Of a DNA stretch of 64,000 nucleotides, positions 30,505 to 49,121 are shown piece after piece (position 1 is the stretch's first letter; each line of letters starts with the position of its first letter). Position numbers and translations under genes: made by a program. The stretch spans positions 144,361,821 through 144,425,820 of the forward strand of contig NC_068984.1 in the NCBI RefSeq assembly GCF_001194135.2, read 5' to 3'. Origin of the DNA: Octopus bimaculoides (taxonomy: Eukaryota). The notes beneath the pieces were generated by a model, which saw only the letters and a program-made list of their open reading frames with translations, did no database searches and was not told the origin of the DNA.

Positions 30505-30618
30505 ATGTCTTCCTCTATACCCATTGCTGATCCAGATGATTATGAAATCTGCCCGTATGACCCTGTTCACAGGGTACAGAGCAGGAGAATGGTTTACCAT
30601 TTAGAAAAATGTCGGAAA
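30505..30618 (+). CDS. GTSF1: GTSF1-like coding exon 1 (CHHC zinc finger 1)
   Basis: MSSSIPIADPDDYEICPYDPVHRVQSRRMVYHLEKCRK = C-P-Y-D-x2-H-x9-H-x3-C (U11-48K-type CHHC). Donor GTAAGT, phase 0. Confidence 0.93.
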
Positions 30619-30642
30619 GTAAGTACACTACTGTAGTTATTA

Positions 30643-30752
30643 TCTCTCTCTCTCTCTCTTTCTCTCTCTCTCTCTCTCTCTCTCTCTCTCTCTCTCTCTC
30701 TCTCTCTCTCTCTCTCTCTCTCTCTCTCTCTCTCTCTCTCTCTCTCTCTCTC
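30643..30752. repeat. (CT)n microsatellite
   Basis: Long CT run just inside the first coding intron. Confidence 0.95.
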
Positions 30753-30949
30753 AGTTACTCTGAATCCCTTTCATCTCAACTTAGCTGTGAACATTCTTGC
30801 TTTTACAATACATAACTTGAAAATAGAAATAATATATTTCTAAATCTCTCAGATTTATGCAGATTTATGCAGCGCAATAAAGTGATAGTATGTTGTCAAC
30901 TTTATGTGACAGTCTCATAAAAGGGAAGAATGCTACTGTTATTTAGCCC

Positions 30950-31920
30950 TAGGAAGTACTGCTTCCTGTTGGCCTAGACACATTTCCTGTGTCCTTATGC
31001 TTACAAAGGAGGAGATAAGCACCTCCACCCAGCATCCAGAGACTAGTTTCAGAGTCATTGCTCATCATCAGTCTGGAGTAGTCTATATTCCAATCCAGCA
31101 TATGACGTTCTTTCTGGGCAAGTTGAACTGCTGCAGTCTCCCAAATTACACTTTGTGGATTTTTAGAGCAGGACCAGATTGAACTGAGGATGTTCTGAAG
31201 TGCAGTATTGACATATCCAGAATTGCAAAATTCAAACCAGTTTGAACATTGTAAACTCAGCACAATAATGGTTCCAGTCTGCTTTATTCCAGTCAAAAGC
31301 AAGCAGTTTGGAAGTGGTAATGGTTCTTGTTTTTGCCCACAAAAGACAAATTGGTAATGACCATAGCATAACCAGAGTCGCCTGAGTCCTCTGTAATGTC
31401 ACTGATAACTATTTCAGGAGTAGTGAAGAGCATATTCAAAGTGTTGTTACCTCTTGTAGGGGGAAGTGACTTCTTGGGACCAACTTGAATCCAGCCCTCT
31501 ATCAGGGAAATCATTTACACTTTGCAGCCAACGAAAAGTTTCCCAATCAATCTTGGAGTAGTTGAGGTCACCAGCAATGAAAACGTAAGTGGTTGTTTTC
31601 CTAGATGCAGTCCTGAGGATGTAAAAAGCTGTGTGTCTTGATGGTACTTTGGTGGGCAGTAGATAGCGCCAAGAAGCAGTGTTAACATGTTGATGCATAT
31701 ATCAGAAAAAAAGCAAAAAACCCTTTTGTTATGATTGGTTCAAAGAATTGTTGAAAAGTTGGAACAAATGTAAACCATCACACAACCCCAACAACGATTA
31801 ACATGGTCATTGCAAAACAAGTTGTAACCAACCATGCTAAAACCAGCATCACAGAATAGAGAGTGCCCATGTTTCTGTGACTGTGATGAAATCAGGGTTG
31901 ATGCTTTTGATGCAAGAGTC
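30950..31920 (-). mobile_element. Decayed CR1/L2-like LINE ORF2 remnant
   Basis: Minus-strand endonuclease motifs GYNLFCNDHVNRCWGCVMVYI and VFIAGDLNYSKIDW, with stops and frameshifts. Confidence 0.7.
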
Positions 31921-31957
31921 AATTAAAAACATAAGTTCTTTTTGTTTTTGTTTCTAG

Positions 31958-32084
31958 AATTTTCCAATGAAAAAAACTCGAATTTGTCCCTTCAATAACA
32001 AACATCGAATTCCGGAGCCAGAATTTCGGTATCATTTGGTTTTATGTCCAGATAAAGCCATTCTTGACCAAGATTTGAAACATG
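31958..32084 (+). CDS. GTSF1: GTSF1-like coding exon 2 (CHHC zinc finger 2)
   Basis: NFPMKKTRICPFNNKHRIPEPEFRYHLVLCPDKAILDQDLKH. Acceptor tttgtttctag, donor GTAAGT; phase 0 to 1. Confidence 0.93.
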
Positions 32085-46100: not shown

Positions 46101-47556
46101 TGAGAAGAGTAGCTGATTAGACTGACCCCCAAAATTGAGCTGGTATTTATTTTATTGATCCCTAAGGATGGAAGGCAAGGCCAGTCTTGACACGATTTTA
46201 TCTCAGAACATTTAGGAACAAACGTGGCCGATGCCAGTGCTGCCTTGACTGGCTCCCGTGCCAGTAGCATGTAAAAAGCACCATCCGATCGTGGTCGATG
46301 CCACCCACCTATGGCTCCTGTGCTGGTGGTACGTAAAAAAAAGCACCCTCTACACTCTCGAAGTGGTTGGCGTTAGGAAGGGCATCCAGCTGTAGAAACA
46401 CTGCCAGATCAGGCTGGAGCCTGGTGCAGCCTCCTGGCTTCCCAGACCCCAGTTGAACCGTCCAACCCATGCCAGCATGGAAAACGGACATTAATCAATG
46501 ATAATGAAACAAAAGACATTTTCTCTATTAAATTAAACAGATCCTACTTTTTGGAACGAGGTGTCTTACCTCCACCACGTGGATAATGTAGACAAATTAT
46601 TCAATGCTAAGAACAGCCAATGATAACCTCAACATCATCCACGCTACGTTATGGGTTTCTTTCCCGAGACACAATGCTTTTATCCTGAATTGATGAAAGA
46701 GAGCATGAGGTCTGATGACACCAAAGATCTTCAAAACCCATCAATACTTAAAAGAATCTTAATGTTGACAGACAGACAGACACATTCTGAGTTTTATATA
46801 TATATAGATGACTCACACTTGTTATAGACTCTTATTATTCTGTTTATGAGAGAAGTGATATTCTTTGAGTACGCACAGCTATGGTCTATGATGTTGGATT
46901 GTGTCAGTCTTTGTGTAAACATAGCAATGGTGCAGGGTTATGACATTCCCTCTAAAGATAACTGTGATGTGCTTGTGATCAGGAATTTGTGATCTTCTTT
47001 CTTTGTAATCATAGCTGTGATATGTGATACTGTCCTCTCAGAATTAAGTATTTCAGAATGCCACTTATCATCATCATCATTGTTTAACATCTTCTTTCCA
47101 TGCTGGCATGGGTTCGGATGGTTTGACTGAGGACTGGCAAGCCAGAAGGCTGCACCAGGCTCCAATCTTATCTGGCAATGTTTCTACGGCTGGATGCCCT
47201 TCCTAATGCCAACTGCTCCAAGAGTGTAGTGGGTGCCTTTTACATGTCACTGGCACCTTACAAAGGTTTCAATTGCTTGTCATCTCCTCCATGAGACCCA
47301 ACATTCGAAGATCAAGCTTCACCACCTTATCCTATGTCTTCCTGGGTCTACCGCTTCCACAGGTTCCAGCACTAAACTATATTTCTCAACACAGGCCGGT
47401 CCCTACAGTTTCTTATGTTACAGTCACATCCTCATACTAAAAATATTGTTCACACTTACTCTAACAATTCAACCAATTGTGCCCTGAATAAACTTTGTCA
47501 AATGTTTGAATTTTTACTGATTTAAAAAAAATTTTCTGTTCTTTTTCATTCATTAG

Positions 47557-47615
47557 ATCGCCAAAATAGCAATGAAAGAGACGTTATGTAAACAACTCGA
47601 ATCCCTAGAATTAAG
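47557..47615 (+). CDS. GTSF1: GTSF1-like coding exon 9 (PYM/eIF2A-like coiled coil, part 2)
   Basis: IAKIAMKETLCKQLESLEL continues the exon 8 motif. Acceptor ctttttcattcattag, donor GTCAGT (phase 2). If unspliced, it stops at 47631. Confidence 0.8.
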
Positions 47616-48454
47616 GTCAGTCTGTTTATGAGTATTTTGATTCTTAAAAAAAAGAATAACTCTAGAAGACCAATATTTTGTTTTTGGGATTTAGATATGG
47701 GATTTCTCTTTTATTGAAGCTATTCACCCTCACTTCAACCTCCAAACATTGAAAGATGTCATTTAATGTATAGAGATACAAGCTACAAATAACTCTTTGT
47801 TTTGGTGATGCTGGTCTACACAGATTTTTATAACACGCCTTGTGTCTCCAAGTAATCTTCAAGCTTTGAGCACATGCTCTGTTTAATTTGAAAACTGAAC
47901 ACTGATACAAAAGAAAAATGAGAAGGCAAATGCTAAAAGTGGAACGGTAAATAAAAATAGAGAAAAGAAATTAGTTATGTCCCCTTTGACTATAAAGCCA
48001 TAATCAAGCTGGTGATTGTAGAATAATTCAATGGAAAAGGTTCCAAAGCCTGCGAGACAACTGCTCGATCGGGTGAGGGTGGTGTCCTCCAGTTTGCCAA
48101 AAGGAATTTGTCCAGATGTTTGCATTTGCTGAAACTCAGCAGTGCAGTGGAATTCTTAGATCTAAAAAGAACGTGATCTTCCAACTATGCATAAGTTGCA
48201 TTTCTTAGATCCATTAAGAAGAATTGGGGAGAAATGTAATCTCAGAAGGCTAAACCTCACAAAGAAGATAAAGGAGCTCCACAGAAGAGATGATTTTTGG
48301 TTGAAGCAACCATGCAGCCCATGTACAATGGAAAAGTACATGTAAAAATGTTGATGAAGATGACACACACACACGTGTGTGTGTGTGTATATATATATAT
48401 TCTTACTACAAATCTCCTCTTATAGATGTAATAATCCATTCTTCTACTATTACC

Positions 48455-48503
48455 GTCTCTGATGAAGGGATACATTGGATCTTCCTTGAAACAGCTGTAA
48501 GAC
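48455..48503 (+). ncRNA. Minimal type I hammerhead ribozyme-like motif (Penelope-type)
   Basis: GUCU-CUGAUGA-[AGGGA...UCCUU]-GAA-AC-AGCU-GU-A|AGAC: intact core, 4-bp stem I, palindromic stem III loop, GUA cleavage triplet. Confidence 0.65.
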
Positions 48504-49111
48504 TTTATACATAAAATATAATTCTAACTTTGCCATTGGTCTCTTTATCCTTTTCTTTCTTTATACATANNNNNNNNNNNNNNNNNNNNNNNNNNNNNNN
48601 NNNNNNNNNNNNNNNNNNNNNNNNNNNNNNNNNNNNNNNNNNNNNNATATATATATATATATATATATATATATAAATAGGAATGGTATGACAACAAGGG
48701 ACTGACTGAGACCTTGATATTATGTAATTAGAGGAATTTATCTGTAATATAATATGTGACAATTATTCGGTTGCCTGGATGTTGGGGTGGAAATCTGCTC
48801 TGGCATCTCGTCAGTTAAGACAATCAAAAAATGCCAGACATCCGAAACTCAGTGTTTTATTATGACAACCAAATAATTGTCACATATATTGCAGATATGT
48901 GTGTGTGTGTGTGTGTATATTTGTTGGTGGGGGGGGGGATCACAAAGAAGGTGAGTATTCAAATATAGGCTTTGTCGGAAGCTGAGGTAGATTTAGTGAT
49001 GTTGTTTTAGAGTATAAGTCCAGTGTGCCTTGCTGAGGTTCAAGTAAATCAGCACAGTTACCTTTCAAACACTGAACTTCCTACAAATGGTTTTTCTTTT
49101 CTCTTTTCCAG

Positions 49112-49121
49112 AGACCATTGA
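49112..49121 (+). CDS. GTSF1: GTSF1-like putative terminal coding exon (R-D-H-stop)
   Basis: Strong acceptor (tttttcttttctcttttccag). Phase 2 joins exon 9 to give AGA GAC CAT TGA. Confidence 0.5.

Follow-up and report, generated by a model that had tools for sequence, protein, structure and literature searches.

What kind of protein is encoded by a gene that begins like GTSF1, a factor of the PIWI-interacting RNA (piRNA) machinery, and ends like the 40S-linked factors eIF2A and PYM? The question is raised by a window of 64,000 nucleotides (nt) from Octopus bimaculoides (the whole stretch of DNA analysed, from contig NC_068984.1), in which a single gene, LOC106881919, occupies positions 30505-49121 of the + strand. 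The locus lies on chromosome CM046604.1 of GCA_001194135.2, with which the window is identical, gaps included. PIWI proteins depend on GTSF1, an essential cofactor, to cut their targets, and what is known of it comes, to our knowledge, entirely from small proteins studied in mouse, fly, silkworm and worm. Judged by its sequence, the octopus protein is a member of a clade of long GTSF1 proteins that is old and animal-wide.

A first-pass annotation of the window had joined ten exons into an open reading frame (ORF) of 975 nt, had likened the N-terminus of the product to GTSF1 and its C-terminus to PYM1 and eIF2A, and had read the combination as a domain fusion that could couple PIWI complexes to ribosomes or translating messenger ribonucleoproteins. 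In this interpretation the identity of the parts stands, but the polarity does not, as the evidence points to an ancient form instead of a new fusion. Candidate exons, with their splice sites and phases, allowed the ten-exon ORF to be rebuilt exactly; all internal junctions are AG/GT with matching phases, and the product (324 amino acids [aa], 36.5 kDa, isoelectric point [pI] 9.0) is residue-for-residue identical to XP_014787926.1/XP_014787927.1 ("uncharacterized protein LOC106881919 isoform X1") and to UniProt entry A0A0L8FPW9. The exact rebuild, the identity with RefSeq isoform X1 and the presence of the same ten exons in a gap-free locus of Argonauta hians together bear out the gene model.

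A GTSF1 core joined to an eIF2A/PYM-type tail

Residues 1-115 constitute a GTSF1 core, made up of a tandem pair of CHHC zinc fingers, the first of which carries basic residues, and an acidic EDW motif. Exon 1 (E1; 30505-30618, aa 1-38) provides the start codon and the first finger (C16, H22, H32, C36), which lies in a Pfam zf-U11-48K match and is conserved in the A. hians locus; E2 (31958-32084, aa 39-81) encodes the second finger (C48, H54, H64, C68) within a second Pfam stretch, and E3 (32619-32720, aa 81-115) the acidic linker with the sequence EEDWE at 32702-32716, in which E110 and W112 are invariant in the orthologue alignment, as are all eight CHHC zinc ligands. The zf-U11-48K model (Pfam PF05253) was matched twice, over its curated cut-off, with an expect value (E) of 1e-15. 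When the whole protein was compared by phmmer with all sequences in the PDB, exactly three matches were obtained; the best was mouse GTSF1 (E 4.1e-17), aligned over residues 6-115 and thus through the EDW motif, and a second GTSF1 was also recovered (E 2.3e-12), whereas none of the other CHHC proteins (U11-48K, TRMT1L) was matched in the same search. The expectation that the N-terminus is GTSF1-like was therefore borne out by both the double domain match and the best match among solved structures.

The likeness extends to residues of known function. In mouse GTSF1, the basic RNA-binding residues R26, R29, K36 and K39 of finger 1 are needed for activity (Arif et al., PMC9385479). Three of these four are matched by R28, K35 and K38 of the octopus protein, and the fourth position is occupied by Q25, adjoined by R23 and R27. 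W112 in EEDWE aligns with the tryptophan of the mouse EDWD motif (W107 in the numbering adopted here), and an E/D-x-W-D/E motif is found in 27 of 32 tail-bearing relatives. The core thus shares with the GTSF1/Asterix family (vertebrate GTSF1, GTSF1L and GTSF2, Drosophila Asterix and Bombyx Gtsf1) the two N-terminal CHHC fingers, the basic residues of finger 1 and an EDW motif situated some 40 residues past finger 2. The remainder of the protein differs. All GTSF1 homologues were described in a 2022 review as being smaller than 20 kDa (PMC9539491), so that the octopus protein, at 324 aa, 36.5 kDa and pI 9.0, is twice the size of that family; it possesses a basic, GRG-rich middle region where the known proteins have an acidic tail, and it terminates in a helix-turn-helix of eIF2A/PYM type. 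The earlier statement that characterized GTSF1 proteins are without this tail agrees with the same review.

The tail is encoded by the last three exons. E8 (41413-41520, aa 267-302) specifies basic helix 1 (IRRLRKKLRQISLLEEQKSAG), up to an invariant glycine at the turn, in a stretch whose profile matches eIF2A and PYM1, and E9 (47557-47615, aa 303-322) specifies helix 2 (IAKIAMKETLCKQLESLEL); the peptide on which the first-pass annotation had relied is encoded on the + strand at 41425-41520 and 47557-47613, i.e. by E8 and E9. The 10-nt E10 (49112-49121) completes R322 and adds D, H and the TGA stop codon; the ending ...LRDH is kept in A. hians, where the region can be aligned. The context of KKLRQI in helix 1 is strongly basic and nearly invariant. 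A structure predicted by AlphaFold2 for the A. hians orthologue contains a helix at residues 273-298, which a turn at the invariant glycine separates from further helices at 305-312 and 314-328, with predicted local distance difference test (pLDDT) scores of 84-95. In the same model, residues 102-268 have a pLDDT below 50 and the fingers are poorly modelled, the alignment being shallow.

Neither in the octopus protein nor in human PYM1 is the tail matched by any Pfam model, and Pfam has no model for a tail of eIF2A/PYM type. Searches of PDB sequences led to human eIF2A in every case: the whole octopus protein, as a single sequence, gave the eIF2A C-terminus as its third match (E 1.2e-3); a profile of four orthologous tails gave eIF2A as the best match (E 4.7e-5); and a profile of 31 diverse animal tails gave it as the sole match at E≤1 among 177,635 sequences (E 1.7e-7). 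The match spans the whole module, corresponding to the last 52 residues of the eIF2A chain. For PYM1, the human sequence used was confirmed as NP_115721.1 by exact look-up; hhalign aligned the 31-tail profile with its residues 147-203 of 204 (probability 96.6%, E 5.6e-10), and hmmsearch gave 36.5 bits at residues 148-202. In a shuffle control the real scores were 41.4 bits (PYM1) and 36.1 bits (eIF2A), and the maxima reached by 2000 shuffles of the same composition were 15.0 and 11.7 bits, respectively; the shuffles argue against a likeness due to composition alone. The octopus tail also scores 63.8 bits with a profile built without cephalopods. On this profile evidence, the C-terminal helix-glycine turn-helix of about 55 aa is homologous to the tails of eIF2A and PYM, and the resemblance that had been noticed in the first-pass annotation is upheld by the eIF2A and PYM1 profile matches and the shuffle control.

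The homology is restricted to this module. With the "eIF2A-like domain" at the C-terminus of PYM1, the octopus protein shares about 55 terminal residues following the pattern K-x-x-K/R-K-L-x-K-K-L-R-Q-I/V-x-x-L ... G ... L ... K ... L, but the Mago-Y14-binding domain (PF09282) of the PYM1 N-terminus was not found in the octopus protein or in four relatives, in a scan in which human PYM1 was positive; the protein is not a PYM orthologue. With eIF2A it shares the same module in the same terminal position (C-terminal helices, native residues ∼532-583 of 585), a region that overlaps residues 529-556, which contribute to 40S-linked translation repression. Similarity to eIF2A is confined to the last ∼52 residues of that protein, however, and the nine-bladed beta-propeller (PF08662) was not found in the octopus protein at E≤1 in the Pfam scan; it is not an eIF2A orthologue either. 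The idea that a resident eIF2A or PYM gene ends in E8 and E9 was rejected, there being no such domains.

Between core and tail lies a basic middle region (net charge +14) that is predicted to be disordered and that contains two GRG repeats along with the conserved short motifs LRLP and VYQFSS. E5 (35323-35471, aa 130-180) encodes LRLP, PVYQFSS and the first GRG repeat, GIGRGRGKG, within sequence predicted to be disordered; E6 (37079-37261, aa 180-241), likewise basic and predicted disordered, encodes the second, VGRGRGT; and E7 (39569-39645, aa 241-266) contributes the lysine-rich CKKKKTKTKN.

Long GTSF1 proteins across animals

The distribution of this architecture was assessed with phmmer, using a 101-aa N-terminal protein as query against 1.84 billion representatives, which yielded 1173 family members. 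Architectures were counted among the best 152 of these (representatives at 50% identity), and the following numbers refer to that set. The tail is carried by at least 35 members, in 32 of which it ends no more than 15 residues from the C-terminus, and 32 of the 35 contain at least one GRG motif. A further 61 members are at least 250 aa long and have no detectable tail (52 with at least one GRG motif), 17 are 200-249 aa long and likewise have no detectable tail (11 with GRG), and 39 are shorter than 200 aa, just one of which contains a GRG motif. The 61 long relatives in which the tail is not detected reflect either repeated loss of the tail or gene models that are incomplete at the 3′ end.

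Tail carriers include the sponges Halichondria and Ephydatia, the coral Oculina, a bryozoan, the brachiopod Lingula, the annelid Owenia, molluscs (a chiton, a limpet, bivalves and cephalopods) and, among deuterostomes, the crinoid Antedon, the hemichordates Ptychodera and Saccoglossus, amphioxus and the tunicates Ciona savignyi and Styela. In the sponges Oopsacas and Amphimedon, endings that resemble the tail by eye fall under the profile threshold. All carriers are labelled as uncharacterized or as "CHHC U11-48K-type domain-containing protein". The long invertebrate proteins of Lingula (LOC106158771), Branchiostoma (LOC109483542), Saccoglossus (LOC102800775) and Ephydatia (Em0005g1177a) resemble the octopus protein in having the core, the EDW motif, a GRG-rich middle and the terminal tail, whereas the length of the middle (271-686 aa overall) and the number of GRG repeats vary widely among such proteins. 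The best-scoring family member listed for Ephydatia muelleri is a tailed long form (Em0005g1177a, 280-282 aa). Both ends of the protein are present in one frame in contigs that are hardly longer than the ORF (514 aa in 1648 nt and 538 aa in 1885 nt), which are probably derived from messenger RNA (mRNA).

Since the same tail is found from Porifera to Cephalochordata, the architecture is old and widespread and is not a cephalopod fusion. The proposal of a new, or mollusc-level, domain fusion is therefore abandoned. The exact protein is already present in RefSeq and UniProt. It is possible that the long form is ancestral and that the short GTSF1 of model organisms is derived. The architecture was not described in the literature found on GTSF1 or on the locus name; the build is thus unnamed rather than unknown to databases and, as a general point, appears to be new in the literature searched.

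Some database members contain two or three GTSF1-type cores in a single sequence. In one of these (P0031, 686 aa) a truncated tail separates the two units, and another (P0018, 1268 aa) includes, by eye, reverse-transcriptase-like sequence; such members are probably merged tandem genes or mis-predictions. When homologues were sought with E1-E3 and E8-E10 alone, only a truncated 101-aa model of Octopus sinensis was matched, and a third search, by tail profile, returned mostly short unnamed fragments with little domain context.

Orthologous loci, splicing and assembly gaps

Within cephalopods the protein can be followed as a colinear unit. The A. hians orthologue is 329 aa long (75% identity) and that of Acanthosepion pharaonis 324 aa (41% identity); both align with the octopus protein with no block missing, and an orthologue of 297 aa is present in the bryozoan Watersipora. 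The least secure element of the model is E4 (34168-34213, 46 nt, aa 115-130), which encodes DSEQKFFKLGAGRIA and on which the joining of E3 to E5 depends; it is required because these two exons cannot be joined in frame without it. Its peptide is conserved as DSEQKFFKLGA(G/R)RI in the Argonauta protein and as DENQSHFRLGRKRV in that of Acanthosepion, and the exon is also conserved in the A. hians genome. Since E4 is unique within the window and conserved, it was rejected as repeat-derived filler.

RefSeq isoform X2 (XP_014787928.1, 321 aa) includes a 25-nt cassette exon at 43382-43406 of the + strand that shifts the frame of E9, so that tail helix 2 is lost. No counterpart of this exon was found in the A. 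hians locus, in which the intron between E8 and E9 measures about 200 nt vs about 6 kb in O. bimaculoides.

Annotation of the locus in other octopuses is inconsistent. In Octopus vulgaris it is split into proteins of 94 and 158 aa, and in O. sinensis there are separate models of 101 and 157 aa. The N-terminal models of both species read into intron 2, and the C-terminal ones take an internal methionine or a spurious exon as their start; an older O. sinensis contig bearing the 101-aa model ends shortly after E2. These split models look like annotation fragments. The C-terminal fragments have been named "eukaryotic translation initiation factor 2A" in O. sinensis (XP_029635671.2) and "Partner of Y14 and mago" in O. 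vulgaris (A0AA36ASR6), names that are probably mis-annotations arising because the tail is common to eIF2A and PYM. Several octopus annotations are wrong, in that fragments of this gene are labelled as eIF2A and PYM.

Short assembly gaps and microsatellites are numerous in the window, a stretch of eukaryotic DNA, and four runs of N fall within the gene. These are located in intron 5 (36339-36390, flanked by a repeat copy resembling a short interspersed nuclear element [SINE] at 36391-36648), intron 7 (40541-41034, flanked by a repeat copy at 41035-41295), intron 8 (42141-42280, an N run) and intron 9 (48570-48646, inside a TA microsatellite); all are intronic and at least 379 nt from any exon. 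In the orthologous A. hians locus, which is free of gaps, the ten coding exons recur in unchanged order, and their junctions fall at matching positions of the protein. Because the gaps are intronic, the gap-free locus has the same exons and the orthologues are colinear, no coding exon is hidden in the gaps, and the gap-free A. hians locus rules that possibility out.

At least two families of SINE-like interspersed repeats, 170-330 base pairs (bp) long, are represented by about ten copies each (71-92% identity) in introns and flanks. In addition to the two copies that directly adjoin assembly gaps, in introns 5 and 7, copies were located at 45447-45626, 46242-46507, 47066-47256 and 62120-62317, among others, and at 44312-44641, 52280-52630, 27132-27362 and 24146-24336. 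A 197-aa ORF at 24298-24891 (+) resembles, by eye, the endonuclease part of a retrotransposon lacking long terminal repeats. A long (CT)n microsatellite begins about 20 nt past the E1 donor (30640-30760), and a (TA)n/(TATG)n tract is present in intron 2 (32290-32420).

Possible partners of the long form

The favoured reading, to which we assign a probability of roughly 0.6, is that LOC106881919 encodes a long GTSF1 whose core would act on PIWI proteins and RNA, whose GRG repeats would act on Tudor proteins and whose tail would probably act on the 40S subunit. By analogy with mouse, silkworm and sponge GTSF1, the core would dock on a PIWI protein together with its target RNA, and would speed slicing. 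The arginine methylation that Tudor domains read in germ granules usually falls on GRG repeats; those of the octopus protein, if methylated, may dock on Tudor-domain scaffolds there, and in silkworm a link between Tudor and Gtsf1L exists. The tail would supply a third contact; PYM and eIF2A suggest by analogy that its likeliest partner is the 40S subunit or a complex associated with 40S, and such a contact would keep the cofactor close to ribosome-bound RNAs. Cassette-exon splicing gives an isoform in which the tail is without helix 2. Tethering to 40S by the tail is the leading, though unproven, reading.

Several published observations lend substance to the individual steps. GTSF1, the sponge orthologue included, accelerates PIWI slicing (PMC9385479). 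In human cells the PYM tail associates with 40S/48S, according to work cited in PMC4072592. In the case of eIF2A, which binds 40S, translation is inhibited by residues 529-556 in combination with the propeller (PMC10570035). Other observations weigh against this interpretation. In ovaries of Drosophila, binding of 40S by the PYM tail was not reproduced; an isolated eIF2A fragment (533-585) left translation uninhibited, and the results of pull-downs using eIF2A termini were inconclusive (PMC10570035). Of the PIWI-binding mouse residues W98, W107 and W112, the second alone has a clear counterpart, namely octopus W112, with F104 and F120/F121 being candidates in an unreliable alignment, and the profile matches of the tail carry a sizeable composition-bias term (17 bits in HMMER). 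Nematode GTSF-1, moreover, binds the RNA-dependent RNA polymerase (RdRP) RRF-3 and not PIWI, so that the partner of long GTSF1 cannot be assumed.

The main rival, which we regard as rather unlikely, is that the tail is not a ribosome binder but a helical hairpin that pairs with itself, with the eIF2A/PYM module or with another shared partner, in which case long GTSF1 would be recruited to eIF2A/PYM complexes or would dimerize. The predicted amphipathic helix-turn-helix has a shape that often packs into four-helix bundles, PYM1 is among the proximity partners of eIF2A and there is only weak direct evidence for 40S binding by the tail in isolation; however, the basic and nearly invariant helix 1 fits contact with RNA or ribosomal RNA at least equally well, and the proximity of eIF2A and PYM1 could reflect a common location on 40S. 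Clearly less probable is a GTSF1-type core that has no PIWI role and serves instead in translation control, in surveillance linked to the exon junction complex (EJC) and nonsense-mediated decay, or in an RdRP/small interfering RNA pathway. The rewiring of nematode GTSF-1 to RRF-3 sets a precedent for this, the tail is common to two translation/EJC factors, and partner choice in GTSF proteins is set by their middle and C-terminal parts, which diverge (PMC9385479). Nonetheless, bona fide GTSF1 is the nearest match of the octopus core, in which the PIWI-binding EDW motif is conserved, and GRG repeats are generally regarded as typical of Tudor-bound piRNA factors. The top-scoring E. muelleri member is, furthermore, a long form, and a Gtsf1 of E. 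muelleri, which may be the same protein although the papers give no accession for it, stimulates a sponge Piwi; if Em0005g1177a is the published EmGtsf1, activity of a long form has been demonstrated already.

Two further alternatives concern the parts themselves. That the tail resembles those of eIF2A and PYM by convergence of K/E/L-rich helices, and not by common descent, might be suspected from a module that is short and biased in composition (hence the HMMER bias term), and designed coiled coils were also matched at E 0.003-0.1 with the shallow four-sequence profile. With the 31-sequence profile eIF2A is matched alone, however; the match covers the whole module, invariant glycine included, and each of the three families has this module at its extreme C-terminus; none of the 2000 shuffles came near the real scores, and annotation pipelines independently called orthologue fragments eIF2A and PYM, all of which makes convergence very improbable. 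It is scarcely credible that the ten-exon model erroneously joins two neighbouring genes, a short GTSF1 (E1-E3) and a separate gene of PYM/eIF2A-like type (E5-E10). The split models of O. vulgaris and O. sinensis and an E4 of merely 46 nt could be taken to favour it, but those models begin at internal methionines or run into introns, and the contig of the 101-aa model stops after E2; E4 is conserved, the joined architecture occurs in dozens of species, including on contigs hardly exceeding the ORF, and E5-E10 encode neither a Mago-binding nor an eIF2A propeller domain.

Most of the non-model animal phyla sampled encode a GTSF1-type protein about twice as long as the known ones, with GRG repeats and with a conserved terminal module that it has in common only with eIF2A and PYM, two factors linked to 40S. 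A more speculative extension, which is on the whole doubtful, is that ancestral animal GTSF1 was long and GRG-rich and had a 40S-binding tail that tied PIWI slicing to ribosome-bound RNAs, the vertebrate, insect and nematode forms being truncated derivatives. If this is true, the small GTSF1 proteins on which the field rests would have lost a link to ribosomes. Long GTSF1 provides a testable handle on the possible tie of the piRNA machinery to ribosomes or translating messenger ribonucleoproteins, and suggests which parts of GTSF1 model organisms may have lost.

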